DNA of 64,000 nt from Mytilus californianus (GCF_021869535.1 NW_026262679.1:117924001-117988000); one strand, 5' to 3'. Positions 11,901-45,995 are shown, counted from the stretch's first letter. The notes: generated by a model from the letters alone, not told the origin. Numbers and translations: made by a program.

Positions 11901-13275
11901 AGTGTATGCAATTGGGTTCAAAACAAAAACTTACACAACTATCAGAATTATGTATTACCGTCAATGAAACATGTATTGAAAATGTTCATTCTTTCAAATT
12001 ACTTGGAATTGACATTGATGAAAATTTAAGCTGGGAGGATCATGTTGATCGTATATGCAAGATTATCTCATCTAAAATATCACTTTTGTTTAAAATTAAA
12101 GTATATTTGCCTGTATACACAAGACAACTATTTTATAATGCATATATTCTACCATATATAGACTATTGTAGTTCAGTTTGGGGAAATTTATTACAAAAAG
12201 ATTCAGATAGAATCATAAAACTTCAAAAAAGAGTAGCAAGAATTATACTTGAATGCGATATTTCTGTTCCATCTAATTTTATGTTTTCATCTTTAAAATG
12301 GCTATCTTTTACAAAAAGAATAAAATACCAACAATCAATTCTAATGTATAAAATTGTAAATGGACTAACACCTGATTACTTAAAAATGCTAAATATTAAT
12401 GATGTGCAACACCACAACTTACGGTCTGTCTCTAATATAGACAATAACTGTTTAGTGTCTTTAAATATCAGCTGTATTTGTACGAGGCTAAGAAACAGGT
12501 GTAATGCGAGCTTCAGCGAGCTATTACTCCTGTTTCGAGCCGAGTACAAATACAGCTGATATTTAAAGACACTAAACAGTTATTGTCTTTATCCTGCAAT
12601 TAAATTTGTACATTTTTTCCCATCCCAATCGTTGAATTTGTTTTTGAAAGAAATCGACATGACTTAAACGCGGACCGCAATGAGGACCCCAAATTGAACT
12701 GTGACGTAAACAGTAATTTGACATAACCGTTCGCTCGCAACAGAAGCAGGATACCAGGAGACTATATACGTCTAGTATACGTATATCGCTTCGTGTTATC
12801 CGACACCTGTATTAGTATAGTAGAAAGGTCGATTGCAGGATAAAATGATCTATTTGTTCCAAGACCAAATACAAATTTTTATAAAAAATCTTTTCATTAT
12901 TCTGCAACAAAGGTATGGAATAATTTACCACTCAAAATAAAAAATTGTCGAAATGTGGAATTATTTAAGAAACATTGTTATAATCATTTTCTTGAAAATT
13001 CTATGCAAGTCGAATAATTTGTTTTCTTTCTTTTATTGTAAGAATAAGAAAATTTAATCAAAACTTTACCAATTATTGCCATTTATTGCCATTTGTATGT
13101 TTGAATGATTGAATTGTGTATATACAAGTAATATATATTGTATTTTAATATATGAATCGAATGTATGAATGTTAACTGTATACATGTATTTTGTTTGAGG
13201 GCCTCAATGAAAATTAGACTACTTCTAATTGAGTTACCCTCTTTAAATAAAGAATTTATTATTATTATTATTATT
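11901..13275 (+). mobile_element. 5'-truncated CR1-group (CR1/L2/Crack) LINE: RT thumb, 3' UTR and (ATT)n tail
   Basis: FKLLGIDIDENLSWEDHVDRICK...YIDYCSSVWGN...LQKRVARII. After the 12437-12843 insertion it resumes as NDLFVPRPNTNFYKKSFHYSATKVWNNLP. It has a 3' stem-loop, an (ATT)n tail and ATA at both junctions. Confidence 0.9.
12437..12843. mobile_element. Palindrome-plus-body element C
   Basis: Perfect 45 bp arms at 12439-12483 and 12544-12588. The body is bounded by TTATCCTGCAAT (12589-12600) and ATTGCAGGATAA (12832-12843). It interrupts the LINE reading frame cleanly (RSVSN|NDLFVP). Confidence 0.9.
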
Positions 13276-14419
13276 ATACGATACAGTTACATGGGAGGTA
13301 ATGACGTTGCTAACGTAAAATGTTATTTCGCGACGTCAAACTGTGACATATCTGGAAAAGATGCATTTTTCGACTGATTTTTATCATTCAGACTGATTTA
13401 ACTTGAAAACGAGTTCATGGACCCCTCTTTTTTGAAATGACACTAGGTTTTATTACATATGAAGATTATTTGTACCAATTTTTATGAAAAAGTCACCGAT
13501 GAAAATTTTTTAAATTAGATAAATATACCGTTTTTTTCTGAAATCATGAAACTTTAATAAAAATTGATTATTTCCAAAGAACCAAAAAAGTTAGGTATGT
13601 TTATCCAAAGGATAGAAATGTCCAAAACAACGAAATTTTGATTAAATGTCTAAAATTTCCACCCCATTTATCCCTTAAAGTAGCACATGAAGGTATATTT
13701 TTTATTACATATTTGAATTGACTAGGTGAAAAATAGTTTGTATGCAAATTTTCGTAAAAAAATCACCGTGGGATCAAAACTGTATCGTATGCCCATAAAG
13801 AGGTTACAAAACACAGAACATAATTTACATAAACATGTCGCGGTGTTTATAAAGACTTTTGTTAAATTTTGGTAATACTCCTATATTCATTATTAGATTA
13901 GAAAACAATAATAAAATATTCGTATTCTTTAATCGATATGTTTTTTATCACACTGTAAGCATATAAAATTGTATTTTTGTCAGACGAATGAAACTTGCAT
14001 GCAGTGTTGGCTTATTTACGCCCTCTTTCATTTATTAGATCATTTTCATCAAAATGTTGCCGCTCTAATTTAATGAGTTTAGAAGACGTTATAACCTTTT
14101 TTCATCTCAAACGTACGTAAATGTTATTTGTAAATGGAAATGTAATTGTTTTAACTTAGTTTTATAAATAGTAATTTGAAATATTCTCTAACTAGCTGTC
14201 TTACTTTTCAAGAAATACAATGATGTCTATTAACTTTTAAACCATGTAATAATTATATTCACACGTCGTAAAATATTTATAGTGTTTTGCAAATTGTTGC
14301 AGGTTTGTCTGCAAGAGATATTCTTGATAAGGAAACTTGAGTTTTCAGTAAGGAGAACTTTACAGGTCCAGTTTTTATGTTTATGTTTTTATGTAAATTG
14401 TTTTTGTGACTCGTACTGA

Positions 14420-15095
14420 TCTTTTGTGTTAAGCCAATTGCTTCTGTTTTTTTTTACAGTTTGTTCTTTATGTTGTGCTGTTACACCACTCTCCCATATT
14501 AGGGGAGGGTTGAGCGCTCACACTACATATTCTTTATGTGCCTGTCCCAAGTCAGGAGCCTGTAGTTCAGTGGTTGTCGTTGGTTCATGTCTGTCATATT
14601 TGTTATTCGTAAATTGTTTTGTAAACAATTAGGCCGTTAGTTTTCTCGTTTGAATTGTTTCACATTTTGCATGTCTGGTCCTTTAAGGTGGTACCAAACA
14701 CCTTGATTAAAATTAATTTGGCTCGTTTAATTTTCATAAAATTTTGACAAAATATTTACTTTGACCCTTTGACAAAAATATAGAAATTTCAAAAAACTTG
14801 AATCACACGCTTTATCGGAAAAATTTCATTGGATATATAACAGTTTGACAAACACTAATTTTGATCATTGAGAAGCTTATTATTTCCTTAACATTAGAAC
14901 GTGAGTAAAACGTTCAGCTGATTTTTACAGAGTTATCTCCCTGTAGTGTTATGTACCACCTTAATAGCCGTTTATACGGTATGAGCTTTCATTGTTAAAA
15001 GTCGTACGGTGGCATATAATTACTCACATCCACTTCATTTGAACTCTGGTGGATAGTCGTATCATTGGCAATCATACCACATCTCCTTATTTTTA
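14420..15095 (+). repeat. PLE 3'-end copy interrupted by a MITE
   Basis: Collinear with 56820-57190 once 14687-14964 is removed. Confidence 0.85.
14687..14960. mobile_element. Kolobok-type MITE (274 bp)
   Basis: TTAA|GGTGGTAC...GTACCACC|TTAA, with the host repeat continuing on both sides. Confidence 0.9.
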
Positions 15096-15384
15096 TATTA
15101 TTATATGGTGTTTACATAGTATTCAAGATAATTGCCAAAAACACACAACTCTTATAAAGAGTCGATTTATCATTTGGTTTATGTTGCCTTATTAGTATAT
15201 CTTATTTTGCTGACCATGTTTGAGTTTGCAGTTATTTTTTAGCTGTTCTTGATTTTAGAAAAATTGATTAAAAAGCATACATAAATTTTATATTCATAAT
15301 GTAAGGGTATAATTTCCTATAAGGAGTCGATTGTTTTTTTTCATTTACTTGACGTGTTTGTAGACCTTATTTATCTTATATTTA

Positions 15385-16165
15385 TCACACATTGTAAGGT
15401 TACAGATTGTCTACATCATATATGAGGAATATCACACATTGTAAGGTTACATGTACAGATTGTCTACATCATATATGAGGAATATCACACATTGTCAGGT
15501 TTGAGATTGTCTACATCTCACAAGGGGAATATCACACATTTTCAGGTTCCATTCTTATTGTCTACATCATATACGGGGAGTATTACACATTGTCAGGCTA
15601 GGAATTGTCTACATTATATATGGGGAATATCACACATTCTAAGTTCGAGAAAGTCTACATTTCACACATTGTCTGGTAAGAGATTGTCTACATTATATAC
15701 GGGGAATATCACACATTTTCAGGTTTGATATTGTCTGCATCATATACGAGGAATATCACACATTTTCAGGTTAGAGATTTTCTACATTATATATGGGGGT
15801 ATCACACATTGTAAGGTTACATGTACTGATTGTCTACATCACATACGGGGTTCAGGTTAGGAATTGTCAACATCATATATGGGGAGTTTCACACATTGTA
15901 AGGTTACATGTACAGCAGATTGTCTACGTCATATATGAGGAGTATCACACATTGTAAGGTTACATGTACAGCAGATTGTCTACGTCATATATGAGGAATA
16001 TCACACATTGCAAGGTAAGGAATTGACTACACCATATACGGGGATCAGGTTAGGAATTGTTTACATTATATATGGAGAATATTTCCCATTGTCAAGTTAG
16101 GTTGTCTACATTAGATATATGGGGAATATCACACATTGTCAAGTAAGAGATTGTCTACATCATGT
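15385..16165. repeat. Tandem array, variable 47-56 bp unit (~15 copies)
   Basis: TCACACATTGT.AGGTT...ATTGTCTACATCATATA.G.GGAATA repeated. Confidence 0.9.
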
Positions 16166-16589
16166 GGGGTATATCTCTAAGTAAGTGAAAAGTGCATGCT
16201 ACCTAAAGCTAAGTATTTTTGTCAGCATATAACATTCTTGATCTCAGCGTTCGGTTGTACAAACATGTAACCTATGTATATTTGACTGTAACGAACGTTT
16301 ATGTTGATTGCTTCAATGTAGTTCTTAATTAGAACCAAGCACATTTAATTGTAGAGACACACCAGTCCTTTATACATTTCACGTTATAATGTATGAAATT
16401 GGAGAACTGTAATCAAAAAGGAATAATTAAAAAACACTTAGTCTTTATCGTAAACCTGATGAGGTGTTCTGAAATAAAAAAAAAAAAACACTAACACAAA
16501 CCAAATGACAACAAAAGCGATTTAAAACGATTAAACAATAATACTAACTTTCCGAAGTAGCATTAGTCTATGCGTATATGAAGTCACCT

Positions 16590-17115
16590 CTTAATCACTG
16601 CATCTACAATTATAACTTTTTCGTGTGGGAATTAGGGGATACATATAGTATGTCCCCTACCTTAATCATTACATCTATAATTTAAGGAATTGGGTGATTT
16701 TTATATTAAGTACCCCTAATCATTGAATCAATGCTAATAACTTTCCGATGTTGGAATTAGGTGATCCTTTTTTAACCCCCCTTTCCTTCTTTCACCACTC
16801 CATCAACTTTCCCGTGTATGACATACGCGATCTTTCTAGTAACCCCCTCCCCCTTTATCAATAACTTTCCCTTAAATTACCCCCCCCCCCCATTTAATCA
16901 CTACACAATTCTATAAAATCCTTATATATATATAACCACTACATCTATGAGAATAACTTTTCAATGTAGGAGTTAGGCGATCCTTATATAACCCCCCTTT
17001 TATCACTACATCAATAATTATAAATTTCCCATGTAGGGCATAGGTGATCATTATATTATCCCCCTTTTTAATCACTACATCTATAACTAGAAGTTTCCGA
17101 TGTAAAAATTAGGCG
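16590..17115. repeat. Highly degenerate ~65-70 bp tandem array
   Basis: Recurrent AATCACTACATCTA...ATAACTTTCC...TTAGG.GATC...CCCCC. Confidence 0.7.
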
Positions 17116-17273
17116 TTCCCGCTAGCAATGATATCAAAATCACAAATTACGATATAATGATTCTTCAGAATACAATAGTAGTGATACCATAGCATACGAT
17201 ACAATGATGCTTCAGAATATAATTACAATGATACCATGGCATACGATACAATGATGCTTCAGAATATAATTAC

Positions 17274-19098
17274 AACAAGAAATGATTGTAACAGGATGCT
17301 GTTACGAAGACTCCCAAACAAAGTTCACATAATTACAGTCATTCCCATGGTCGCCGGACATTGGGCAAAGTCCAGTAAAAATTGGTTTGGTCCAGTAAAG
17401 TGATATGCATTAGTGACCCCTGGAGACTGACCTTATATATCATTCAAATCTTCGTGACATGACAAACAGGAATATATATGGTTTAAGGGTGGGGATCTTT
17501 ACTATTTACAAGATATTTGAACATATTCAAATGACAGGGGTTGGGGATGACCCCTTGGGGATGACCCTGTATATCATTCACATCATCTTGGCATGACAAA
17601 CCAGAATATACATGGTTTAGGGGTGGGGATCTTCACCATTTACCAGATATTAGAACTTTCTCAAATTACAGGGGGTAGGGGGTAATCCCTGGGGACTGAA
17701 CCTATATATCCTTCAAATCTTCTTGACTTGGCGAATAGGAATATATATGGTTTAGGGGTGGGGATCTCGACCATTTACAAGATATAAGATCATTGGGGGT
17801 GATGGAACCCTTGGGGACTAACCCTATATATCATTCGAATATTTGTGACATGACAAACAGGAATATATATGGTTAAGGAGTGGGGATCTCGACCATTTAC
17901 AAAATATTAGAACTTTCTCAAATGGCAGGTGGTGGGGTGACCCCTAGAGACTAATTTCTTATATAATTTGATGTGCTGTTTCATGACAAACCAGAATATA
18001 TATGGTTTAGGGGTGGGGATCTCGACCACTTACAAGATATTAGAACTTTGTCAAATGGCAGGGGGTAGGTTTGCCCCTGGGGACTAACCCTTTATTTCAT
18101 TTGATGTGCTTTATCGTGTAGAACATTTTCAATAATATAGATTGTGTCTATCACTTACTGTTTTCAAGTTATAATCATTTGAAAATAAAAAATATAAAAT
18201 CCCATAGGGTTTCTATAGTAAACCCCTCCCTTCTTTTTGCCCCTCAAAGTACCCCTTTTTAGACCTCAATGCACAAACGAAACCCTGATTGCCCCACTAG
18301 ACATGTTAGTCTAACATATTGTGAAACCTTAAGTAAATCTGACTAGCGGTTTTCGAGAACGGGTGCGGACAAGTTCATTTAAAAATGCGGCGGAAGAGGA
18401 AGAGGGAAGAGGAAGAGGAAGAAGAATAATAACTAGAATTGCCATTGCAAGCAAGAGCGGATGTCACCTGCCCCCATTGCCACGGTTACGGAAGCCATTT
18501 TGAAAATTCTAAAGTCGAATGCTAGATAAATATATACCAGTTAACATTTCTGTAAAATTTTGTTAAGTTTGGAGCATTTTGATTTTTTTTTACACTTTAG
18601 CTGTTTCCACGGCAACGGCGGCCATTTTGGAAATTCCAAAGTCAAAAGTCTCATCTTCACTTGCCAGTTAACAATTATATTAAGTTTCATTAAATTTGGA
18701 GCATTTTGAAATTTTTAGACATTTTTGTATTTGTGATGTTTCCATGATAACAGTGTCTGTTTCCACAATTTCAAAGACAGATGCCACATTGGCACATGAC
18801 AGGGAACATACCATGAAAGAATCACGGTGTTTGGCCTACCATGTTAAGTGAGTAAATGCCACTGAAAGAATTTTCCCATAGGGTCCAATGGTAAACTTTT
18901 TCTCCGGTTTCCATGGCAATGGCAGCCATTTTGGAAATTCCAAAGTTAAATGCACGGACAAAAATGTTGGAAGAATAATAATAATAATGAAGAAACGGAG
19001 AAAAAGCAATATGTCACCTCACATTGTCGATCGGGTGACATAATTATTATAAGAACTGAGCAAAAACAATGTCTCCAAACTTTGTTTGGGAGACTTAA
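17274..19098 (+). mobile_element. HINE-like element with an internal ~134 bp tandem array, inserted in the 47 bp satellite
   Basis: AACAAG start. Subterminal IR AAGACTCCCAAACAAAGTT (17307-17325) matches AACTTTGTTTGGGAGACTT (19078-19096) at 18/19. There is a 3' GTCTCC...GGAGAC hairpin, and GGGGATCT recurs at 17491, 17625, 17760, 17882 and 18015. Confidence 0.85.
18431..19043 (+). mobile_element. Second HINE-like element nested in the (AAG/AAT)n tract of the first
   Basis: AACTAG start, ATGTCACC at 18461 and 19011, terminal GGTGACAT at 19034-19041 (hairpin), and its own (AAT)n microsatellite. Confidence 0.8.
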
Positions 19099-19852
19099 TA
19101 ATACCATGAAATACGATACAATGATACTTCAGAATGCAATAGTAATGATACCATAGCATATGATACAATAGTAATGATACCATAGCATATGATACAATAG
19201 TAATGATACCATAGCATACGATACAGTGGTGCTGCAGAATATAATTACAATGATACCATAGCATACGATACAATGATGCTTCAGAATGCAATAGTAATGA
19301 TACCATAGCATACGATACAATGATGCTTCAGAATATGATTACAATGATACCATGGCATTCGATACAATGATGCTTCAGAATGGAATAGTAATGATACCAT
19401 AGCATACGATACAATGATGCTTCAGAATACAGTTGCAATGACACTATAGCATACGATACAATGATGCTTTAGAATATAATAGTAATGATACCATAGCATA
19501 CAATGCAATGATGCTTCAGAATACAGTTACAATGATACCATAGCATACGATACAATGATTCTTCAAAATATAATAGCAATGATACCATAGCATACAATAC
19601 AATGATTCTTCAAAATATAATAGCAATGATACCATAGCATACAATACAATAATGCTTAAGAATACAGTTGCAATGATACAATAGCATAAGAAACAATGAT
19701 GCTTCAGAATACAATAGCAATGTTACCATAGCACACAATACAATTGTGCTTAAGAATACAATAGCAATGATACAATGATGCTTCAGAATGCAATGGCAAT
19801 GATACCATAGCATACAATACAACGATGCTTTACAATACAGTTGCAATGATAC

Positions 19853-20403
19853 TATACAATTATAGCCTTTGTAGGAGGTCGATACAAGGATATATTGACC
19901 TGAAAGAAGTATATTGACTGAGGACGAAGTCCGAGGTCGATATACTTCTTTGGGTCGATATATCCTGTATTGACCTCATAAATAGGCTATAATTGTTATA
20001 TTATTAATTTCCGACCATATTTGTATCAAAATCGTCATTTGATTTTGTTGTAATTCTATAGATATCATATTGTCTTCTAGACAATAACAACAGATTAGTT
20101 GTTATTTCATTTACTTTTTTGATGTTTTTTTTACATGTTATGTATTTGAAGATTTTTTTTCTTCAAATAATCGATCATAGATATTTTTTTTATAAAACTT
20201 TTAACAATATCATGAAATTCATAACATGACGTCACAAAGTATATCGGTTTTTAGATATTCTAAAAATAACCGTGCAATATGCTTTTTGCCGTGCAATATG
20301 CATTTTGCTATCCGCCGTTTTCTCTCTACCTTCGAAAATATAGTTTAACATGTGACTATCCCTGAACGAATCAAATTAGTTAAAATATACGAATTAATAA
20401 TAT
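19853..20403. mobile_element. Palindrome-plus-body element A
   Basis: Palindrome at 19853-19998 centred on GGAC-GAA-GTCC. The body is bounded by ATATTATTAATT (19998-20009) and AATTAATAATAT (20392-20403). Inserted in the 47 bp satellite. Confidence 0.85.
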
Positions 20404-20523
20404 CATTGTATATGATACAATGATGCTTCAGAATATAATAGCTATAATACCATTGCATACGATATAATGATACTTCAGAATACAATACTACGGCGATAGA
20501 TATAAAGATATTGTTCATACTTA

Positions 20524-20886
20524 ATATTATTAATCGAATATTTTTAAGGATTTGTGATTCGTGAAAACTTGATCACATGTACATTTGTATTTGCTCAGTT
20601 TGCACGCCAATACTGTTGTGTTTAGCTTTTCGTAGGTCAAAAACAGCATATTGCACAGGGCATACAGCATGTTACTAAAAATAGATTCTAGAAATCCCCA
20701 ATTTTACATTGTTCATGCTATAGTTGTTGATTAATAATATAACAATTGTAGCCTTTGGTTGAGGTCAATACGATGTTATATCGACCCAGAGAAGCATATC
20801 GACCTCGGACTTCGTCCTCAGTCAATATGCTTCTCTTAGGTCGATATAACCTCGTATCGACCTCATACAAAGGCTATAATTGTATA
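20524..20886. mobile_element. Palindrome-plus-body element B (same family as A, opposite orientation)
   Basis: The body is bounded by ATATTATTAATC (20524-20535) and GATTAATAATAT (20729-20740). The palindrome at 20741-20886 is centred on GGAC-TTC-GTCC and is nearly the reverse complement of A's palindrome. Confidence 0.85.
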
Positions 20887-21571
20887 ATATCATGACTGAC
20901 AGATATTTTAAAAACAGTTTTTAACTAGGTGTGAGGATAATTTTCTTTTGACAAATTTACACAGAGTGAAAAACATTTGAATGATTTTTTGAAACACTCT
21001 AAAATAAATCTTTTTTGGTAAATATTGGTTTAAGAAAATGATACCACAACGCCGAAAATATTATATTTCCGCTGGCAACAACGCCGTCATTGCATCATCA
21101 TCAACGCAGTTTTTCATGGACGGTGAAAGCAGTACACACATCAAGAGAAGGCGTAATACACAATGATTGATTAACACTGTATCTTTGTCAAATATCAAAA
21201 AATGATCTCCTGCCTTTACAAATATTTGGCCGTTTCTACTACAAGATATGGTTTTGGTTATTTTGTAGTCTGTTGAAATTGTCTAAATGGCTATTTAATG
21301 CACCGAGCACCTAACAACTACCTGTAAACAGTCGATTTATATCATTATAACCTATACATCTTACAAATATACACATTTGTACCTAATGTTCTTCGTTTTA
21401 TATTAACTGAAACATGATCTATTATATATGTTAGATTAAAAATAAATGGTTTATGAAACAGTTTTCATTAAAAGCCGTTAACAAAGCCATTTATTTGAAA
21501 TAACAACATAATTTGATAAATAGGTGCAAGTGTATCAATTCTGACGCATCTAATTTTTAATTTATATGTAG

Positions 21572-21626
21572 CATGCTGAAAGTCTTAAAGATTTATCAGA
21601 CAAAGTTATTAAACATGTGTCAGAAG
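21572..21626 (+). other. Candidate 55 bp exon of an unidentified gene
   Basis: T-rich tract plus TAG acceptor, AG|GTGAAA donor, and an open frame HAESLKDLSDKVIKHVSE. No homology recognised. Confidence 0.2.
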
Positions 21627-21834
21627 GTGAAACGTAGATATCTTTTAATGACAGAATCGTTAGTTTTCTTTTTCTTAGTTTTACGGTGTTGGAATTTGAA
21701 TATCCTGTATATGTTAATTCACAAGTAGTGCAACATGCATATATAGGACGCCCAGCTTAGACTTTATGTCTGATTTAATTAACATGGTGACCGATATATG
21801 GCGGTTTGATGAAGTGCTTATTGACAAAATGTGA

Positions 21835-21975
21835 AAAAATTCAAAGAGAAATCCAACGGCCTGATTCATGTTAAAACGACTAGCGAAAAACAAATAAGAC
21901 AATCCAATGAATTACAGACTCTTGACTTGGTACAGCACAGAAGAATGGGGCGGGGTTAATATGTTTGAGAGTGCT
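21835..21975 (-). repeat. Partial PLE 3'-end copy
   Basis: AACGGCCTGATT...CGAAAAACAAATA...ACAGACTCTTGACTTGGTACAG...GCGGGGTTAA is the reverse complement of part of 56895-57030. Confidence 0.65.
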
Positions 21976-22116
21976 GAAATCCCCCCTTACCTGCAAGAAC
22001 AGCATATAAGAATCAGGCTGAAAAGGCAATGATTCTACTAACTTTGAAATCCCCCTTTACCTGCAAGAACAGAATATAGGAATCAGGCTGAAAAGGCAAT
22101 AATTCTACTAACTTTG
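21976..22116. repeat. 70 bp tandem duplication
   Basis: GAAATCCCCC.TTACCTGCAAGAACAG...TTCTACTAACTTTG at 21976 and 22046. Confidence 0.9.
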
Positions 22117-22296
22117 TCTGTCTATTATAATTTAGGGATTAACTTGTTAGCGGACGCCCGACCCTTCATCTGACTTGGGATAGCGGTATAACAGCACAAC
22201 GCATTGCTAAGTTATAGAACACTTACTAGAGGCCGAGATAAAACAATATTTAACAACTTTTTTGTTCCATTTAGTGACATAATCGTAATTAATGTT

Positions 22297-23590
22297 ACAA
22301 CCCAAATCACTACTGACTGGGAAGCATGACAACCTCCGCAAGGAAAAGTAGTGATAAGCAGGTACTATATAATAGATGTTAATTGAGTACAACCCCAATC
22401 ACTACTCACTGGGAAGCATGACAACCTCCGCAAGGAAGAGTAGTGATAAACAGGTACTATATAATAGATGTTATTTGAGTACAACCCCCAATCACTACTG
22501 ACTGGGAAGCATGACAACCTCCGCAAGAAAGAGTAGTGATAAACAGGTACTATATAATAGATGTTAATCGAGTACAACCCCAATCACTACTGACTGGGAA
22601 GCATGACAACCTCCGTAAGGAAGAGTAGTGATAAGCAGGTACTATATAATAGATGTTAATCGAGTACAACCCCAATCACTACTGACTGGGAAGCATGACA
22701 ACCTCCGTAAGGAAGAGTAGTGATAAGCAGGTACTATATAATAGATGTTATTTGAGTACAACCCCAATCACTACTGACTGGGAAGCATGACAACCTCCGT
22801 AAGGAAGAGTAGTGATAAGCAGGTACTATATAATAGATATTAATTGAGTACAACCCCAATCACTACTGACTGGGAAGCATGACAACCTCCGCAAGGAAGA
22901 GTAGTGATAAGAAGGTACTATATAATAGATGTTAATTGAGTACAACCCCAATCACTACTGACTGGGAAGCATGACAACCTCAGTAAGGAAGAGTAGTGAT
23001 AAGCAGGTACTATATAATAGATGTTAATTGAGTACAACCCCAATCACTACTGACTTGAAAGTATGACAACCTCCGCAAGGAAGAGTAGTGATAAGCAGGT
23101 ACTATATAATAGATGTTAATTGAGTACAACCCCAATCACTACTGACTGGGAAGCATGACAACCTCCGCAAGGAAGAGCAGTAGTAAGCAGGTACTATATA
23201 AGAAATGTTAATTGAGTACAACCCCAATCACTACTGACTGGGAAGCATGACAACCTCCGCAAGGAAGAGTAGTGATAAGCAGGTACTATATAATAGATGT
23301 TAATTGAGTACAACCCCAATCACTACTGACTGGGAAGCATGACAACATCCGCAAGGAAGAGTAGTAGTAAGCAGGTACTATATAAGAAATGTTAATTGAG
23401 TACAACCCCAATCACTACTGACTGGGAAGCATGACAACCTCCGCAAGGAAGAGTAGTGATAAGCAGGTACTATATAATAGATGTTATTTGAGTACAACCC
23501 CAATCACTACTGACTGGGAAGCATGACAACCTCCGCAAGGAAGAGTAGTGATAAGCAGGTACTATGTAATAGATGTTAATTGAGTGCAAA
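22297..23590. repeat. Homogeneous 92 bp tandem array (~14 copies) with an internal inverted repeat
   Basis: Unit starts at 22391, 22483, 22576 and 22668. Each unit holds ATCACTACT...AGTAGTGAT. Confidence 0.95.
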
Positions 23591-23950
23591 TCAAACAACA
23601 GGATTTGTCAGCAGCAAATGTGTACAGTATCAAAGTTTTCTTATTATATTTATACGGCATTCAACATTCCATTTATTCTTCTCGTAAATAAGTAAAAATG
23701 TTTCATTAGAAGCAAACTATGCAATTAATTAATTTCAAGTAATATATGATTTAAACAGAATCTTTCATTAGATAAAAGTACATTGAAACTTGAGCACATC
23801 AATAAAAATATCACAAGTTATTACTACAAACAAACAAACAAACAAACAGGCAGACAAACATGGTAGTATAATCAATTACAACTTATTGACTCCAATTGCA
23901 GTGAAACCAAGATTTTTTTTCAGGACACATGTCAATCCAACGAAGATTTA

Positions 23951-33913: not shown

Positions 33914-33929
33914 CAGAGGCGGATTGATG

Positions 33930-33963
<34 letters not shown>

Positions 33964-34120
33964 CAGGTTGGGGGTAGGGGAGGGGGCAGGTTTTGAGGGA
34001 AAAATTTGGTTGATTATTTAGGGACCACTGAAGCATGACTGGAGCGGGCCCCCTCTTATGGCAGTCAGTGGGATCCCCCCCCCCCCCCCCCCCCCATGTA
34101 AATTTCTGGATCCGCCACTG
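33914..34120 (-). mobile_element. CAGTGGCGGATCCAG-type MITE with G32 and C21 homopolymers
   Basis: CAGAGGCGGAT (33914) ... TCTGGATCCGCCACTG (34120), with G-run 33931-33962 and C-run 34075-34095. Confidence 0.75.
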
Positions 34121-35404: not shown

Positions 35405-35512
35405 ATGATAACTTAGGTGGTCTTTACGGGACATCTATGTCATGTATATCCTACATCATCATAACTAAGGTGGTCTTTACGGGATATCTATGTCATGTAT
35501 ATCCTACATTTC
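35405..35512. repeat. ~54 bp tandem duplication
   Basis: CAT.ATAACT.AGGTGGTCTTTACGGGA.ATCTATGTCATGTATATCCTACAT twice. Confidence 0.9.
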
Positions 35513-35559
35513 CTGTTCTTCATTAATCAGCATAGTGACCATATCACAAGTGAACAGGA

Positions 35560-38500
35560 ATAAACACATATCTGAGGGAATAACCAGTAACAGGAATATC
35601 GTCACACCTGACTATTTAATCAGTAGACAGGAAACATGTTACACTTGACTATATAACCAGTAAACAGGAATATTGTCACACCTGACTATATAATCAGTAG
35701 ACAGGAAACACGTTACACTTGACTACATAACCAGTAAACAGGAATATTGTAACACCTGACTATATAATCAGTAGACAGGAAACACGTTACACTTGACTAT
35801 ATAACCAGTAAACAGGAATAAGGTTACGCTTGACTATATAACCAGTTACATGAATATCGTCACACCTGACTATATAATCAGTAGACAGGAAACACGTTAC
35901 ACTTGGCTATATAACCAGTAAATAGGAATAAGGTCACACCTGACTATATAACCAGAAAACAGGAATAACGTCACACCTGACTATAATCAGTAGACAGTAA
36001 AAACGTCACGCTTGACTATATAACCAGAAAACAGGAACAACGTCACACCTGACTATAATCAGTAGACAGTAAAAACGTCACGCTTGACTATATAACCAGT
36101 AAACAGGAATAAAGTCACACTTGACTATATAACCAGTAAACAGGAATAACGTCACCCTTGACTATATAAACAGTAAACAGAAATAACGTCACGCTTGACT
36201 ATATAACCAGTAAACAGGAATAACGCCAACCTTGACCATATAACCAGTAAACAGGAATAACGTCACACTTGACAATATAACCAGTAAACAGGAATAACGT
36301 CACGCTTGACTATATAACCAGTAAACAGGAATAATGTCACACTTGACCATATAACCAGTAAACAGGAATAACGTCACACTTGACTATATAACCAGTAAAC
36401 AGGAATACCGTCACCCTTGACTATATAACCAGTAAACAAGAATAATGTCACATTTGACCATATAACCAGTAAACAGGAATAACGTCACCCTTGACTATAT
36501 AAACAGTAAACAGAAATAACGTCACACTTGACCATATAACCAGTAAACAGGAATAACGTCACACTTGACTATATAACCAGTAAACAGGAATACCGTCACC
36601 CTTGACTATATATCCAGTAACATGAATAACGTCACACTTGACCATATAACCAGTAAACATGAATAACGTCACACTTGACCATATAACCAGTAAACAGGAA
36701 TAACGTCACACTTGACCATATAAACAGTTAACAGAAATAACGTCACACTTGACAATATAACCAGTAAACAGGAATAACGTCACACTTGACTATAAAACCA
36801 GTAAACAGGAATACCGTCACACTTGACTATATAACCAGTAAACAGGAATAACGTCACCCTTGACTATATAACCAGTAAACAGGAATAACTTCACACTTGA
36901 CTATATAACCAGTAAACAGGAATAACGTCACACTTGACCATATAACCAGTAAACAGGAATAACGTCACACTTGACTATATAACCAGTAAACAGGAATACC
37001 GTCACCCTTGACTATATAACCAGTAAACAAGAATAACGTCTCATTTGACCATATAACCAGTAAACAGGAATAACGTCACCCTTGACTATATAAACGGTAA
37101 ACAGAAATAACGTCACACTTGACTATATAACCAGTAAACAAGAATAATGTCACATTTGACTATATAATCAGTAGACAGGAAAAACGTCACGCTTGACTAT
37201 ATAACCAGCAAACAGGAATAACGTCACACTTGACTATATATCCAGTACATAGGAATAAATACACACATGACAAAACAACCAATGAAAAAAAAACTACGTA
37301 CATGGCCATATGACAAGTAAGCAGGAATAACGTCACACTTGATTATATAACCAGTAAAGAGGAATAACGTCACACTTTCAAGTAAACAGGAATAAAGTTA
37401 CACTTGACTATATAACCAGTAAAAATGAATAACGTCATATAACCAGTAAACAGGAATAACGTTACACTTGACAAAATAACCACTTAACAGGAATAACGAC
37501 ACGCCTGTCTAAATCTGTCTATATAACACGTAAACAGGAATAACGTCATACTTGACTTTATAACCAGTAAACAGAAATAATGTCACACTTGACAATATAA
37601 CCACTAAACAGGAATAACGTCACACCTTTCTAACCTGTCTATATAACAAGTAAACAGGAATAACGTCATACTTAACTATATAACCAGTAAACAGGAATGA
37701 AGTCACACTTACAAGTAAACAGGATTAACGTCACACTCGACCGTATAACCAGTAAACAGGAATAACGTCACACTTGACAATATAAACAGTGAAAAAGGAA
37801 ACCCACTTACCTGACCATATAACCTGTGAACAGGAGTAATGTCATTCCTTACTATATAAACAGTAAACAGGAATAACGTAACTGTGACACAGGCCTATAA
37901 AACCAGTAACCAGGAATAAAGTAACACTTGATTATAAAACCAGTAAACAGGAATAACGTCACACCTGTCTATATAACAAATAAACAGGAATAACGTCACA
38001 CTTACAAGTAAACAGTAATGAAGTCACACATGACTATATAATCAGTAAACAGGAATAACGTCACACTTGACAATATAACCAGCAAACAGGAATAACACTA
38101 TACTCGACAATATACCCAGCAACCAAAAATAACATTATACTTGACAAAACAACTAGTGAACAAAGAAAAAACCCACGTATATGACCTTATCGCACCGCGG
38201 GTAAATTATGACGTTGTGATTGGTTGAACGACGTCACGTGGTGACCCCTATGGATCCGTAGGGGGTAAGTAAATTTCATATGGGGTTCATGACGTCACGT
38301 CTACTGTTAATGGTGACGTCATCTATTGATGTTATTGCATTTCATCTTTTATTTTTCTACAAAACGCGGCAGGAAATGTCCCGCATGCGATAAATTCGTT
38401 ATACGGTTCCCTACTGACCCCCTACGGACCATAGAGGGTGAGTAAAATACATAGAAGATTAGGCCTTCGGCCTCACCCCCTATGGATTTTACTAACCCTC

Positions 38501-38800
38501 TATGGATCCGTAGGGAGTCAGTAGCGAACCATATGACTTATAATATAACCAATAAACAGAAATAACGTCACACTTGACAATATAACCACTAAACTGGAAT
38601 AACGCCACACTTAACAATATAACGAGTAAATTGGAATAACCATTTATCTGACCATATAACCGGTATATAGGAAATACCATACGCCTGATTACATAACCAC
38701 TGAACATGAATTAGTACGCGCCTGAACTTATAGTAAGTAAATACAAATAACCCAACTTATAGCCAGTAAACAGGAATAACCACACACCTATTCTAAACCA
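35560..38800. repeat. 37 bp satellite array (main block)
   Basis: Unit ATAACCAGTAAACAGGAATAACGTCACACTTGACTAT (period 37 at 36244/36281), interrupted at 38187-38541. Confidence 0.95.
38187..38541. mobile_element. Palindrome-plus-body element D
   Basis: The body is bounded by TTATCGCACCGCGGG (38187-38201) and CCCGCATGCGATAA (38380-38393). Palindrome arms at 38401-38454 and 38480-38534 surround AGGCC-TTC-GGCCT (38461-38473). TTAT is at both ends. Confidence 0.85.
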
Positions 38801-38826
38801 TACGCAAAAATTGGTAACCACAAACA

Positions 38827-39140
38827 TTATACAATTATGGCCCGCTGAGGAGGTGAATATCCAAATTTTGTTTATCTGACGTTAAGTGACGTCCCACTTT
38901 AAAGGGAGTTAACTCGTGATCATTGAGGTACGACAAGGGTTATTCACCGGGGAATAATAGGGTTGTTCGAGAGGCTTCAATTTGTCGGGGTTATTCATCG
39001 GTGATAATAGGGTTGTTCAATGGAGGCTTCAATTTGTTGGGGTTATTCACCGCTCCTGCCAATTTTTGGAAAAACATCGAAAATAATTTATGACACGTGA
39101 TTCCGTATTAGCCAATCAAATAATTGACAAAATAATTACT
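38827..39140. mobile_element. Probable degenerate member (H) of the palindrome-element class
   Basis: Starts TATACAATTATGGCC (14/15 with the A/B terminus TATACAATTATAGCC). Contains a GGTGAATA...TATTCACC inverted pair, an internal ~50 bp tandem duplication and an AGCCAATCA box. Confidence 0.4.
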
Positions 39141-39141
39141 A

Positions 39142-39981
39142 TTTATCATATACTTAGCATTAATATGATAGCTTTTGCATATGTGTAATGAACGGAAGTA
39201 CACAAGCCATAATTTCCCACCCGGGCTGATAACCCATATCAGGGGCGTCTCGTGCAAAAAAAACCATAACAGTGCCTCTCGTGCAAGTTACTTCCGGTAT
39301 TTCCGGTATCGTATGTTTACTTTTCCATTGTGGCGTCAGATATTTTTTATTATGACGTCAAAATTTTACGGGAACTTTTGGGATGTCCAGTAATGGCGGA
39401 CAAAAAGCGATAAGGTTTATTGGATCCAGTGGTAAATCTGTTTGTACAGAACCAGCTGTTATTGAAAAAAAAGATGTTAACATGGCTAAATCCGATGATA
39501 TAGATTTTCAAAATGATGCTAGTTTACAATTAGTTCTTGCTGATTAAAGGCCATTGACAAATATGAATCATCTCACATAGTACAACATGTAGTAATAATG
39601 ATCATAAAACTGTAAATACTTCCTCCATGCTTCCAGCTTCCAAATTTTTAATGTTTCAAAATTCCTCTATAGGAAATGGTACCATAATATATATGGAGGT
39701 AGTGATGCTTTTGTTGGACAATTATAGTGTATTTGTTGGATTCATGATTTAACTTCTTTAAAAAGTTTTTGACTATTTTAGTTATTTCATTTGTTTATTT
39801 GCCTTACATAAAACAATTGTCGGAAGTATATGATAAAGAGATTAATACATGACCTTTTCCATATCGGCCCGGGTATCATCCCTCGACCAATATCAGCACC
39901 TCGACTAAGTCTCGGGCTGATATGGGGGTCTCGGGTTATACCCGGGCCGATATGGAAAAGGCCATGTATTAATCTCTATAT
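39142..39981. mobile_element. Palindrome-plus-body element E
   Basis: The body is bounded by a perfect 14 bp IR, TTTATCATATACTT (39142-39155) and AAGTATATGATAAA (39824-39837). Palindrome arms at 39837-39876 and 39938-39977 match 39/40, centred on GAC-TAA-GTC. Confidence 0.9.
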
Positions 39982-40014
39982 AATGTAAGGTATAATAATC
40001 AACATTATATGATA

Positions 40015-41245
40015 AACTGAATAACCACACGTCTGACCCTAACAACTGCCCATATAACCAGTTAATGGGAAATACATAACACATGACTTTAAACAGTAAC
40101 CAGGAATTCACACACCTGACCATATAACCAGTAAACATGAATAACCGCGCACCTGACCGTAAATAAACAGTAAGCTGGATTGATTACACACCTGACCAAA
40201 ATATAAGCAGTAAGCAAGAACAATAACACACCTGGTCATATAAAATGTGAACAGGAACAACCGCACACCTGACAATATAACAGTAAATAAGAATGACCGC
40301 ACACTTGACCATAAACCAGTAAAACAATAACTGCACACCTGACCACAAACCAATAAGGGACCGTTCAATATTTATCAGAGTGATGGGCCAGTGCATTCTT
40401 AACATTGTTTCATTAAAAAAGTTGATACCCATCCTTTTAAATTCTGCAAAAAAGTGCTTGCACATCTCAAAATTCTATAACAAAAGTGCTTGCCCCTCTA
40501 AAACTTAAAAGAATAGTCTTTAGTGTAATTCAAAATACTTGTACACTGTGTAAGACTGGTATTTGAAATATTTTTGGAACAAAATATTGCTACATATATC
40601 GATCCTTTATCTGTCTTTAAGATATCAATATAGAATATCATCCATACGATAAAATCATCTATAGATATTAAAAAAAGATCTTGCCTATCCAAATATTTAC
40701 ACAAAAAAAGTGCTTGCCCCGCCCCATTTTGCACATACCCATCCATCTGATAAATATTGAACGGTCCCTAAACAGGATTAACCGCACACCTGACCATATA
40801 CCAGTAAACAGGAATAACCGCACAACTGATCCAAGTGACAGGAATGACCATATACCTGATTATATAACAAGTGACAGGAATGACCACACATCTGATTATA
40901 TAACAAGTGACAGGAATGACCACATGACCACACACCTGATTATATAGCAAGTGACAAGAATGACCATATACCTGATTATATAACAAGTGACAGGAATGAC
41001 CACACATCTGATTATATAACAAGTGACAGGAATGACCATATACCTGATTATATAACAAGTGACAGGAATGACCACACATCTGATTATATAACAAGTGACA
41101 GGAATGACCACATGACCACACACCTGATTATATAGCAAGTGACAAGAATGACCACACACCTGATTATATAACAAGTGACGGGAATGACTACACACCTGAT
41201 TATATTACAAGTGACAGGAATGACCACACACCTGATTATGCACCC
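40015..41245. repeat. Diverged continuation of the 37 bp satellite, ending in a 36 bp variant block
   Basis: ATAACCAGTAAACAGGAATAACCGCACACCTGACC-type units, then ATATAACAAGTGACAGGAATGACCACACATCTGATT (period 36 at 40867/40903). Confidence 0.85.
40357..40768. mobile_element. MITE with GG termini and TAA TSD (Zator- or Harbinger-type)
   Basis: TAA|GGGACCGTTCAATATTTATCAGA...TCTGATAAATATTGAACGGTCCC|TAA (23 bp perfect TIR). Removing it restores the satellite unit CCAATAAACAGG. Confidence 0.9.
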
Positions 41246-42250
41246 ATTTTACTAGTGAAATGGATTATCCACACACGTTATCATATGAATAGTAAACCAA
41301 AATAGATATAAACAATGCACTTTAAGAATTGATGTTATATCGTATGCTATGGTATCATTACTATTTTATTCTATATAGCTATATTGTAATTTTTTTTTTG
41401 GTGGTTTCTTGTCAGTGTTGATAGCTTAACTAAATTGGGATCTTATCTTTTATCTGTGGGAAAATCATACCAAAGGTTGTCGAAAGTGGACGCAATAACT
41501 GTACTTACAGAAAAGCTTCTAAAAGCTGACGAAAGATTTGTTATAACGTGTAGCATGAATATTTAATCGAGAAAATTAATTAATATTGCTTTGTCTGTAC
41601 AAGGCTCATTAGGAATCTTTGCCATTATGAAACATTTGAAACGACAATTTATAGAAAATGAATCATTGCATTTGTGACTACTTGTTAGACGGATGTTGTT
41701 GCATGAATTATTATGCTATAATTTTAACTGAATACAATAACAATTCTTTGATTGATACTGTGATATAAAACCCTGTGTTCAGTCTGATAGTATTTAATGT
41801 AATATTAAATCTTTGATTGAAACTATGATTTCATTTATGAGACAGTTAGTACAATATTGCTGCATTGATTTGAACATCGTTTTATACAATGCTTAAATGC
41901 TTGTTCCTTAACATCAAATATTCTTTAGCATTTATTACGCTAGGGATAACTTCTTCAACATTTGATGACCACAATTTCGAATAGAGATAATTGGGATTGT
42001 TCTAGGATTAACAAATTACTCATGTGAAAGTTTAGTAACATATATGGGTTTTTAGAAGAAAATTGGTATTTTAGTATAAGAATCTGTAATTATAAAACAC
42101 CTTTTTTTTCTAGTACGAAATAAACACTTGTTACAATTCCCGGAAATAAACGTATCTGGCCTTGAGTGTAGTGTGGTATGATGTATCCATACAGACCAAA
42201 GGGCAAGCTTGTGATTTATCCCGCCTAGGCCTTTTTTTTCTATTCTCAAA

Positions 42251-42493
42251 TCATGATTATCCCGCCTGACGCCTTTTTGTCTACACACGAGATAAATATA
42301 TACTTCTTGACGTGTATTTGTCTACACACGAGTCATAACTATACTACTTGACGTGTACTTGTCTACACACTAGTCATGATTATCCCGCCTGACGTCTTTT
42401 TGTCTACACACGAGTCATAACTATACTACTTAACGTGTATTAGTCTACACACGAGTCATAATTATTCCGCCTGACGCGTTTTTGTCTACTCAC
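42251..42493. repeat. ~41 bp tandem array with two alternating variants (6 copies)
   Basis: All units end GTCTACAC.C.AG; the variants are TTATCCCGCCTGACG and CTATACTACTTGACG. Confidence 0.9.
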
Positions 42494-42536
42494 GAGTCAG
42501 CATTGTCCATTGTCTATTGTTTTGTATCTGAAAGAT

Positions 42537-43780
42537 GTATCACACGGCTTTGTGTTCTGTATTTTTATGCTGTATCACACAGCTTTGTGTTCTGTATTTT
42601 TATGCTGTATCACACAGCTTTGTGTTCTGTATTTTTAGGCTGTATCACACAGTTTTGTGTTCTGTATTTTTATGCTGTATCACACAGCTTTGTGTTCTGT
42701 ATTTTTAGGCTATATCACACAGCTTTGTGTTCTGTATTTTAGGCTGTATCACACAGCTTTGTGTTCTGTATTTTTATGCTGTATCACAAAGCTTTGTGTT
42801 CTGTATTTTTAGGCTATATCACACAGCTTTGTGTTCTGTATTTTTATGCTTTATCACACAGCTTTGTGTTCTGTATTTTAAGGCTATATCACACGGCTTT
42901 GTGATCTGTATTTTTATGCTGTATCACACTGCTTTGTGGTCTGTATTTTTAGGTTATATCACACAGCTTTGTATTCTGTATTTTTAGGCTGTATCACACA
43001 GCTTTGTGTTCTGTATTTTTATGCTATATCACACAGCTTTGTGTTCTGTATTTTTAGGCTATATCACACAGATTTGTGTTCTGTAATTTTATGCTGTATC
43101 ACACAGCTTTGTGTTCTGTATTCTAGGCTGTATCACACAGCTTTGTGTTCTGTATTTTATGCTGTATCACACAGCTTTGTGTTCTGTATTTTTAGGCTAT
43201 CTCACACAGCTTTGTGTTCTGTATTTTTAGGCTATATCACACGGCTTTGTGTTCTGTATTTTTATGCTATATATCACAAGGCTTTGTGTTCTGTATTTTT
43301 TGGCTGTATTACACAGCTTTGTGTTCTGTATTTTTAGGCTATATCACACAGCCTTGTGTTCTGTATTTTTAGGCTATATCACACAGCTTTGTGTTCTGTA
43401 TTTTTATGCTGTATCACACTGCTTTGTGCTCTGAATTTTTAGGCTATATCACACAGCTTTGTGTTCTGTATTTTTAGGCTATATACACGGCTTTGTTTAT
43501 TATATTAAAAGGCTGTATGATACTATCACTAGGCTTGTTTACTATATTTGTAGGTTGTATCGCACGCCATTTTGTTCTGTATTTAGAAGCTGTATTACTT
43601 GGATTTGTGTACTATAATAAGGCTGTATCACAGGGCGCAGTGTTCTGTATTCGAATGGTGTATCAGAAGAATTCGTGTATACTATATTTGAAGGCTGTAT
43701 CACACGCCTTTGTGAATATTATTTAAATATGCTGTATCACACGACATTGTGTACTGTATTTGAATGGCGATGGATATGTG
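42537..43780. repeat. 35 bp satellite array (~27 good copies, then decaying)
   Basis: Unit TGTATCACACAGCTTTGTGTTCTGTATTTTTATGC (period 35 at 42541/42576). Confidence 0.95.
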
Positions 43781-44232
43781 TACTAGTATATTGTTTTTGA
43801 ATTTGTACTGTATCACACGCCAGATTGGTGTATTGCATTTAAATGTTGGGTCACACTTGACCAATTGGAAACTGTAAAGATAAAACGATGTGTAGAGAGA
43901 AAAAAAAACCCGCTTGTAATCTGAATTTCACACAACTCCAGTACTGAAAATTGAAATTGAACATTGCAAACATCAAAACAGAGTAAAATTTTTCATTTTG
44001 ATACCAATGGTTGAAACATACCAAATAAAATACTTTACATTTATTTTTGTAAATTTTTTTTTGCATATATTATCATAGCCTTCACCTTTTAACTATATAC
44101 CCATTTACATTTTTACATTACTTAATCCGACAATTTTGAAATAAGCATGAATAGAATGAATGTTTACATATTATAAAGAATCTTTTAATTAGAGAAAACC
44201 CAAAGGATTGACACAGGTATAGAAATGTGCTA

Positions 44233-44580
44233 ACAAGGACTGGAGGTTTATAGCTTGTGATATGGTAACACGGACTGGATGTTTATCATAGCTTGTGATA
44301 TGGTAACACGGACTAGTGAATTAGAGCTTGTAATATTGTTACCTGAACTGGAGTTTTAAAGCTTATGATATCGTGACCTGGGCTGGAGGTTTAAAGCTTG
44401 TGATATGGTAACAAGGACTGGAGGTTTAGAGCTTGTAATATGGTAACAAGGACTAGAGAATTAGAGCTTGTGATATGGTAACCTGGACTGAAGGTTTAGA
44501 ACTTGTGATATGGTAACCTGGACTAGAGGTTTAAAACTTGTGATATGGTAATCTGGATTGTAGGTTTAGATCTTGTAATA
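44233..44580. repeat. 35 bp tandem array (~10 copies)
   Basis: Unit AACAAGGACTGGAGGTTTAGAGCTTGTGATATGGT. Confidence 0.9.
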
Positions 44581-44972
44581 CATGTAGCATGTGAATCAGA
44601 GCGATATTGTACATTATTTGTAGACTCAAACAGATATATAATACATTCTTGTATTATACTAATTTACTTTCTCAGTTCAATGTTCCAAATTAGATGATTT
44701 TTAATTCTGCAAGAGTCAATATATATAGAAATATATATTTATATAAAATGGTAGAAAATCCCGTCACAGATATTTTTATGGACGTATATACCACACATTA
44801 TATCTAATACAATATCCACGAGCTAAAATGAATCTAATTTAATATGTATATAAAGATGATTAAATTCTTCCTCGGATATGCTTCGGTGTAGCATGAAATA
44901 ATAATACTGGAGTGTTATATTCTGGTTAATCCCGTAAATTGATTGATTACTTTGACAGGGGATATCAGACCA

Positions 44973-45750
44973 TTATAAAATGATATCAGATTTACATGGC
45001 ATTTTTGTTATATCAGATGTATTATCAACCCAAGGTTCAATATCAGCCCAAGAGCCGAAGGCTCGAGGGCTGATATTTACAGAGGGCTGATAATACATCT
45101 ACCATGAAAAATGACATGTTATGATCTTTTTATCATAATTATGCTTCAACAATGGAGAAAAATAACAGTTTAATATATCACCCTTTTAAGTGGTTCTCAA
45201 GTAGAAGTTCTAAAAGTGAAAAGTTCACGGACGACGGACGCCAATTGTAATACATCCGATAGGAAATCTTTCATCATATGCCTCAACAGAGGGGAAAAAC
45301 AACAGTATATTATATTTTTATAAATATAATATTGACGATAAAAAAAACAAAAAAAAACATAATGAACACTGTTTGGAAAATTAAACATTTGTAAATTAAC
45401 TTGCTAAATTATGCTGGAAACTTTGAAAAATGCATTTATTGTATCATTTGTTTTGCATTTTACATTATATATTTTCCTGTTTCCTAATATTTGTTTTGTA
45501 CCTTATTTTGTTATGTTTTTTTTTCACTGAAAACGTACCATTGGGGTGTATTATCCGGATTTTGCCGAGTTTTGACGGAGATGTATGTGATAATATTGAC
45601 GGAAAGGCATGTGATAATTTCCAAATGCAGTCGATAAATTTTTCATATCAGTCCAGTTAGCACCATTTCGGAAAATATGGAATTCACGTAAATTTAATGC
45701 TATTATCATTCTGTAAAAAATATAAGTTATTTACTCTAAGTATATGATAA
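44973..45750. mobile_element. Palindrome-plus-body element F (related to E)
   Basis: Nested arms at 45015-45031/45084-45100 and 45039-45049/45067-45077 surround GAGCC-GAA-GGCTC. The body is bounded by TTATCATA (45130-45137) and CTAAGTATATGATAA (45736-45750); the latter is the exact inverse of E's distal 15-mer. Confidence 0.75.
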
Positions 45751-45850
45751 TAATTCTTTATTTTCATATAAGTAAAACATGATTATACACTGTGAACAAA
45801 AACGGAGATTAGAATGGATATTAATGTTGAAATCAGGACACTCCAGAATA

Positions 45851-45995
45851 ATATAATTGTTATTCGGGCTTCATAGGGGATATGGGCTCATATTCCCTGT
45901 AAGTGTTTTGGTGGCTCAGGGGTATTAAACGCTAACAGGGAATATGAGTCCATACATATACTTTGTGTAAAATCCCGAATTACTATTTACAGTAT
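45851..45995. mobile_element. Isolated long palindrome G (body not identified)
   Basis: TATGGGCTCATATTCCCTGT (45881-45900) and ACAGGGAATATGAGTCCATA (45935-45954) pair at 19/20, with an outer TATTCGGG / CCCGAAT pair. Confidence 0.65.

Follow-up and report, generated by a model that had tools for sequence, protein, structure and literature searches.

Cryptons are, to our knowledge, among the least understood transposons of eukaryotes: their ends have been called undefinable, and we know of no transposition substrate for them. Bacterial tyrosine recombinases (YRs), for their part, include enzymes that act on folded DNA, the integron attC sites and the attP(+) hairpin of CTX phage being such substrates. 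The Helentron/HLE2 elements carry inverted repeats (IRs) of 12-16 nt with a 3' stem-loop after the right repeat, make no target-site duplication (TSD) and occupy T-rich sites (PMC11417382, PMC4067079, PMC7492417). The stretch considered here, a 64,000-nt piece of the mussel Mytilus californianus (G000:C99:117924001-117988000, hereafter the window) from an AT-rich genome of 1.65 Gb in 175 contigs, holds six elements from five families, in each of which an IR-bounded body is joined to a hairpin-forming palindrome of 126-161 nt. Comparison of their ends with those of recombinase-coding elements suggests that they are very probably non-autonomous (miniature) Crypton DNA transposons of the DUF3504 type, presumably moved in trans. 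Non-autonomous Cryptons as such are already known; what appears to be new is the architecture of the ends, which was absent from the Crypton literature searched, PMC3212892 and PMC13465315 included. No palindrome or hairpin at Crypton ends was found in that literature, and neither word occurs in those two papers.

The families were named F1, F2 (with a sub-family, F2b), F3, F4 and F5, and their coordinates are collected in Table 1. Every palindrome adjoins a body with its own IR of 11-15 nt, for example TTTATCCTGCAAT / ATTGCAGGATAAA, which match at 13/13 positions. Folded as single-stranded DNA, each of the six palindromes formed a single long hairpin (-33 to -64 kcal/mol, z -9.8 to -18.5) that none of 200 shuffled sequences equalled, and in five of the six the apex is a 3-nt loop on a GC-rich stem. 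Read with the body first, the order is IR-L (11-22 nt, mostly starting TTAT or ATAT), body, IR-R, 0-5 nt, palindrome and tail; over the window elements and their autonomous relatives together, the palindrome measures 126-162 nt, with a GC-rich apex stem and 3-nt loop, and the tail 3-6 nt. An earlier note on this DNA had described such a two-module layout, and the palindrome, the IR and the folding bore it out in all six elements. It was also right to count at least four sequence-unrelated families: F4 and F5 are related through their IR and palindrome, F2 and F2b have ends but not bodies in common, and the remaining families have no sequence relation to one another. Its boundaries held for F1 (with 1 nt of ambiguity), for F2 (exactly) and for F2b (within 6 letters), whereas F3 probably ends at 38542 and F4 at 39979, not at 38541 and 39981 as proposed.

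The layout recurs around recombinase genes elsewhere in the genome. Phage_integrase matches are numerous (96 scored among 1,167 candidates), and nine Crypton-type loci (DUF3504 + Phage_integrase) were fetched; seven of these genes have a palindrome of 137-200 nt within 1 kb, and four are enclosed in a body bounded by IRs, beyond one of which the palindrome lies. The best defined element, CryM-1 (L115/L118), is about 2.99 kb long, and at least seven full-length copies, 96-98% identical, begin and stop at the same bases. It runs from the end GTTTTAG through a palindrome of about 140 nt, ATCAC, a 22-nt IR and three gene pieces, which match QRICH1, DUF3504 and Phage_integrase, to a matching IR that forms the other terminus. 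Of eight further recombinase loci, six have a 137-200 nt palindrome 0.2-0.8 kb from the DUF3504 + Phage_integrase gene. Between the copies of a 13-nt IR (265 and 3363, one mismatch) L133 holds a complete gene of two exons that codes for 494 aa, with the palindrome, 3377-3537, immediately beyond the IR; L135 has a 17-nt IR, and the unit 1084-3595 of L137 (G000:C110:122957351-122961450) is matched from end to end by a second copy at 95%. When CryM-1 and L133 are circularised they show the same cyclic order, the gene in the body-first layout simply pointing the opposite way. The body of the autonomous relatives thus carries an intron-containing YR gene (QRICH1 + DUF3504 + Phage_integrase), which may point either way. 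This supports the central guess of the earlier note, that mobilisation is by a Crypton-type tyrosine recombinase, the autonomous elements having the same layout around a DUF3504 + Phage_integrase gene.

Open frames of L115, L131 and L133-L138 match DUF3504 and/or Phage_integrase, three of them also QRICH1. The catalytic motifs NH..R and GH...Y are well kept, with N268, H269, G294 and Y304 invariant and H295 nearly so among 11 aligned proteins. The closest relatives of the transposon proteins are in Mytilus coruscus, at 87% (with one element reaching 97% in DNA), and in M. edulis, at 85-86%, and a sequence search of solved structures with the recombinase gave no match. It is very unlikely that the ends are recognised by some other enzyme, such as an HUH or hairpin-binding nuclease, with the Crypton genes merely riding inside. 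Such a possibility draws on the fact that the recombinase is tied to the ends by sequence, not biochemistry, and that palindrome-ended single-strand transposons without TSDs exist in bacteria (IS200/IS605); it is opposed by at least five sequence-unrelated families (L115, L131, L133/L139, L135, L137) and loci in Pinctada and Mercenaria that pair a Crypton-type gene with the layout, by bodies in L115, L133 and L137 that contain no other open frame of at least 100 aa, and by the improbability of the same gene type being captured repeatedly.

The window elements themselves can be tied to these recombinase-coding elements to differing degrees, with ends in common for F5 and F4 and a weaker likeness for F3 and F2. 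The IR-R and palindrome of F5 match those of the YR-gene element L137:1084-3595 at 89% over 97 nt (E 5e-31). When the 3' modules are aligned, 34 columns in a row, counted from the end of IR-R, are identical; the 5' ends are also alike (TTATCATATAC in F5, TTATCAGATAT in L137). One long YR-coding element of the kind that the earlier note had proposed to look for, L137, thus has an end module homologous to that of F5. The F4 3' module is 76% identical to Crypton-gene loci L136 and L137, and that of F3 is 73% identical to a palindrome-bearing element beside the Crypton gene in L138. For F2, the palindrome edges and IR resemble the Pinctada Crypton locus (68% over 92 nt, E 8e-4).

Table 1. Palindrome-bearing elements and related features of the window, in plus-strand coordinates
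Feature	Coordinates	Strand	Length	Palindrome extent	Parts
F1	12437-12843	-	407 bp	12435-12592	tail 12437-12439; palindrome 12440-12587; IR 12590-12601 (TTATCCTGCAAT); body; IR 12832-12843
F2	19853-20403	-	551 bp	19849-20004	tail 19853-19855; palindrome 19856-19996 (apex GGAC-GAA-GTCC); IR 19997-20009; body; IR 20392-20403
F2b	20524-20886	+	363 bp	20734-20890	F2 ends, other body; IR-L 20524-20535; IR-R 20733-20745; palindrome 20746-20883; tail 20884-20886
F3	38187-38542	+		38398-38537	IR-L 38187-38201 (TTATCGCACCGCGGG); IR-R 38380-38393; spacer ATTC; palindrome 38398-38537 (apex AGGCC-TTC-GGCCT); tail to 38542
Partial element	38827-39140	+			read directly from sequence; starts as half an F2-like palindrome arm (ACAATTATGGCC...); body with GACGT motifs; abuts F4 start
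F4	39142-39979	+	~838 bp	39827-39987	IR-L 39142-39153 (TTTATCATATAC); IR-R 39827-39838; palindrome 39839-39977 (apex GAC-TAA-GTC); short tail
F5	44973-45750	-	778 bp	44994-45119	older; palindrome ~44990-45117 (apex GAGCC-GAA-GGCTC); IR-like stretches adjoining palindrome and at 45740-45750
Solo imperfect palindrome	45851-45995	.			core 45881-45954; outer arms TTATTCGGG / CCCGAAT; shorter, no body module attached

Searches of the genome yielded 1,093-2,599 first-look candidates per family, and 40 matches were scored for each. In every family both modules were spanned by 40/40 of the top matches, at an identity of 93-100% for F1-F4 and 82-87% for F5; F1 alone has at least 40 full-length copies at 95-98%. 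Since the top matches cover both modules in all five families, palindrome and body constitute one mobile unit and move together, contrary to the possibility, raised in the earlier note, that the two occur as independent repeats. The thought that each element is a chance or nested composite, a fold-back element beside an ordinary cut-and-paste miniature inverted-repeat transposable element, has accordingly next to no probability. It could appeal to the solo palindrome at 45851-45995, and to F2 and F2b, which have the same palindrome and different bodies, but the whole unit is what repeats, the empty sites described below remove both modules at once, and neither module is flanked by a TSD.

How the elements insert can be read from empty sites of three kinds. 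The host of F1 (window 12137-12436 + 12844-12943) is a very young long interspersed nuclear element (LINE), of which at least 40 copies match the queried 300 nt at 98-99% identity. Four uninterrupted LINE copies read CTCTAAT/AATGATC (the slash marks the insertion point), which defines the insert as 12437-12843 with 1 nt ambiguous. One F3 copy is nested within another on C110, where the host reads AACA/GTAG with nothing duplicated, if the element ends in CTTATA. Finally, contigs from four other individuals of the same species (X1, X2, X3, X18) were compared over 18800-21800. For F2, contigs of X1 and X3 join 19852 to 20404, an exact skip of 551 nt with 0 ambiguous letters, and X2 and X18 show the same skip with two single-nucleotide polymorphisms. 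F2b is absent in four of four other individuals, 20521 being joined to 20885; the 363-nt skip has 6 ambiguous letters (TAATAT), and 20522-20884 is compatible within this ambiguity with 20524-20886. One X3 contig of 1,189 nt is without both F2 and F2b, while X1 and X18 also have contigs that run across the left junction of an occupied F2 site. Filled and empty contigs thus occur among individuals, and the F2 and F2b insertions are therefore polymorphic. The LINE paralogue, the nested copy and the alleles of other individuals agree that insertion leaves no TSD, as the earlier note had maintained, and the elements are still inserting in living mussel populations.

The flanks of 50 independent insertions pooled from F1 (29 copies), F2 and F3 revealed a 12-nt target signature, TA at -9/-8 followed by N-T-A at +1 to +3. 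The individual positions were T at -9 (41/50, P 9e-13), A at -8 (41/50, P 5e-12), T at +2 (49/50, P 5e-23) and A at +3 (41/50, P 5e-12). The window copies of F2 and, by eye, F4 fit the signature fully, F2b fits except at -8, and four of six CryM-1 copies fit each half. The signature is seen in F1, F2, F3 and CryM-1, which means that three unrelated families and an autonomous Crypton use one target geometry. The N-T-A of the 3' flank, in which +1 varies and the T at +2 is fixed, mirrors the first bases of the element itself (TTA or ATA), and the TA...TA spacing of the target is off by one base from the joined ends in F1 and F2. Microhomology to the joined ends amounted to 2.3 nt in F1 and 3.5 nt in F2, against 1.0 nt by chance, and to 6 nt (TAATAT) in F2b; it was not enriched in F3 (1.2 nt) and is not obligatory. 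Immediately 5' of the element, 27 of the 29 F1 copies have T, and the base varies in F2 (7 A, 4 T, 1 G) and F3. With this variation and the conserved T at +2, the target geometry is not the T^T of Helentrons.

Several observations weigh against a Crypton origin of the window elements. Animal Cryptons were described as being without terminal repeats (Kojima and Jurka, PMC3212892). Among the loci examined there was no YR-coding master with F1-homologous ends, and a partial search of this genome did not find masters of F1, F2 or F3. The sole F2 link to a YR-coding element, that to Pinctada, is weak and crosses species, and the F3-like palindrome of L138 is part of a short element (3480-4033) located downstream from the gene, not demonstrably of the element that carries the gene. 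L132, L134 and the M. edulis locus L140 had no long palindrome in the stretch examined. In addition, the layout also fits the published HLE2 scheme (PMC11417382, PMC4067079, PMC7492417), and precise head-to-tail F2 dimers in the genome (...TTGTATA/ATATTATT...) also fit rolling-circle transposition. One 'go back' contig joint was present in X18, and tandem copies could explain both this joint and the genomic dimers.

These last points belong to a rival reading, in which the elements are HINEs, the non-autonomous members of the Helentron/HLE2 group, and a RepHel rolling-circle transposase moves them, the stem-loop after the right repeat serving as terminator. Fusarium Helitron2 hairpins have GAA triloops like those of F2 and F5 (PMC5148889), and the genome holds at least 126 Helitron_like_N matches in at least 12 lineages, one of them with an intact 2,417-aa open reading frame (ORF), helA, for DUF6570, Rep, PIF1 and endonuclease. 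The short IRs round the body and the stem-loop after the right repeat are indeed as in Helentrons, but the stem-loop is 126-161 nt long, whereas published HINEs have short palindromes, of 5-10 bp in mites and described as 'short' in oyster. Helentrons were sampled over the 5.8 kb that follow the helA ORF, over 4 kb on the 3' side in five more lineages, and over 10 kb to each side of two M. edulis Helentron genes; within this limited sample, the 3' stretches of six RepHel lineages (L065-L070) and the two M. edulis loci (L111, L112) contained no palindrome of at least 30 nt and no F-like ends. The genes found in IR-bounded bodies with such palindromes were tyrosine recombinases, never RepHel. 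A pattern search with the F2 3' end gave 435 exact matches, none near a RepHel or YR match among the 100 listed. With no RepHel partner bearing such ends in this limited sample, and a target that is not T^T, the rolling-circle reading was rejected and is considered very unlikely.

The helA gene (L041 + L065, G000:C165:92339401-92351000) appears to be an intact Helentron gene, its 2,417-aa frame matching DUF6570, Helitron_like_N, PIF1 and Exo_endo_phos. Just downstream of its ORF lies an unrelated 747-bp repeat with about 32,000 first-look candidates, which swamped the matches in the search for the helA 3' boundary. A 2.33-kb spacing at C2:101-114 kb was considered as a rolling-circle multimer and rejected, being a macrosatellite that merely contains an F2b copy. 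This macrosatellite (L113, G000:C2:106881-109270; array C2:101083-113907) lies near a contig start and has at least five units of 2,329 bp, each with a complete copy of F2b, a palindrome like that of F4 and, internally, tandem repeats of about 110 bp.

The layout recurs in other species. The L133 family is 97% identical over 3.3 kb, gene enclosed, to a M. coruscus element (L139) with the same IR (15 nt, one mismatch) and a 162-nt palindrome, and this comparison fixes the 3' end of the family at ...ATTATTTCTTAAAT. In Pinctada (L142) an IR-bounded gene is followed by a 145-nt palindrome. The Mercenaria locus (L141) yielded no IR pair, but motifs of the IR-R end, the palindrome edge and the tail recur 1.7 kb past its gene; the motif TTAGAATC/GAAATAAT...ATTATTTC/TTAAAT is common to Mytilus and Mercenaria and in the latter flanks an otherwise different palindrome of 171 nt (8122-8292). 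Comparison of F4, F5, L136 and L137 showed that 18/48 hairpin pairs are kept by two-sided changes. The palindrome arms are imperfect, with a similar self-match, 82-88%, in the F1 copies listed, so one arm is apparently not recopied from the other at each move. This disfavours the hairpin-primed route that the earlier note had offered beside the recombinase.

The proposed mechanism is as follows. The window elements would keep only the ends, on which the YR of autonomous relatives would act in trans. The recombinase would excise the element as a circle, with the tail joined to IR-L, so that the circle junction would be one large palindrome, IR-R-palindrome-IR-L, of about 170-190 nt, and recombination would then take place between this junction and a target that resembles it loosely. 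A probable role of the fold-back is in presenting or synapsing the two IRs. The earlier note had predicted two inverted recombinase-like sites, at the a'-b and b'-a junctions; when the boundary of IR-R and palindrome was scanned for lox/FRT-like cores (arms of 12 nt, spacers of 5-9 nt), matches of 5-10/12 were obtained in no consistent pattern. It is possible, though doubtful, that the palindrome is itself the recombination substrate, folded as a cruciform or single-stranded hairpin at whose base IR-R and IR-L meet. Such a folded substrate is suggested because it is the pairing and not the sequence that is conserved (the two-sided changes above), the GC-rich apex stems end in 3-nt loops, and the edges are conserved between Mytilus and Mercenaria. 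If true, the mussel Cryptons would be the first eukaryotic tyrosine-recombinase transposons acting on folded DNA, like integron integrases on attC or XerCD with CTX phage.

Other features of these loci deserve mention. The window elements are tightly clustered (38187-39979, 19853-20886, 44973-45995), with 6-8 per 64 kb and several abutting or less than 120 nt apart; the clusters sit in satellite-like AT-rich DNA, at a density estimated to be far above that expected from genome-wide copy number. About 1.3 kb of the window (60669-61986) matches its own reverse complement at 67-69% identity and may be a large degenerate palindrome or an inverted satellite. GACGTCA (CRE-like) motifs lie near the IR in the F3 body (38200-38330), L115 (125-165) and L133 (270-285); they stand upstream of the gene in autonomous Cryptons and also occur in the gene-less F3 and F4 bodies, and may be a retained promoter. 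In Mercenaria mercenaria (CM038771.1), a self-inverted stretch of 1,224 nt at 86% (L141 6447-7670) directly follows the Crypton gene. The Crypton of L137 sits inside another high-copy repeat (1-1097 and 3563-4100), uninterrupted copies of which have one 23-nt stretch resembling the Crypton IR core (TTATCA.ATATTT), as if the Crypton had entered an att-like site or had left one cleanly. Among YR families without the layout, no long palindrome was seen in L114 (347 aa), L116 (343 aa) or the DIRS-like L117. Of these L114 (G000:C24:63914601-63918400) is the most abundant YR family, with a 347-aa frame and at least 45 matches within about 6 bits of each other, and it forms a 1,712-bp direct tandem.

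The window has thus provided five non-autonomous families, exact empty alleles, a common target signature and conservation of end motifs across species. Sharply bounded, abundant and polymorphic mini-elements are now available, as are the corresponding recombinase genes, a defined target signature and the conserved fold-back, so that donor, helper and target can be built, which is enough for a first Crypton transposition assay. The Helentron-like layout also means that structure-based repeat annotators may misfile these elements in bivalve genomes.

Among known systems, the Helentron/HLE2 elements (HINE, DINE-1, Cg_HINE; PMC4067079, PMC7492417, PMC11417382) are alike in layout on paper, in the lack of a TSD, in AT-rich targets and in tandem dimers, and both groups are abundant in bivalves; they differ in having a RepHel partner, short stem-loops and a T^T target, where the mussel elements have a tyrosine recombinase as partner. 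DIRS1-like retroelements have in common with the mussel elements a tyrosine recombinase, inverted terminal repeats with an internal complementary region and no TSD, but they move via RNA and encode reverse transcriptase and RNase H, neither of which the mussel elements have; about 300 kb separate the window from one DIRS-like element, L117 (RNase H + methyltransferase + YR). The attC and CTX attP(+) sites likewise combine a tyrosine recombinase with a long imperfect palindrome in which pairing and not sequence is conserved, although they are bacterial, whereas the mussel host is eukaryotic, the palindrome is about twice as long, and a single-stranded or cruciform substrate is hypothetical here. 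Closest are the DUF3504-encoding Cryptons of the CryptonA type (Goodwin 2003; PMC3212892; Glomhopper 2026, PMC13465315), which are alike in having a YR with DUF3504 as their sole gene, introns and no reverse transcriptase, in making no true TSD but only short target microhomology, in non-autonomous derivatives that far outnumber the masters, and in a circular intermediate as the proposed route. Compared with these published Cryptons, the mussel elements have sharp ends, with IRs of 11-22 nt and a palindrome of 126-162 nt outside one IR, and also show a 12-nt target signature.

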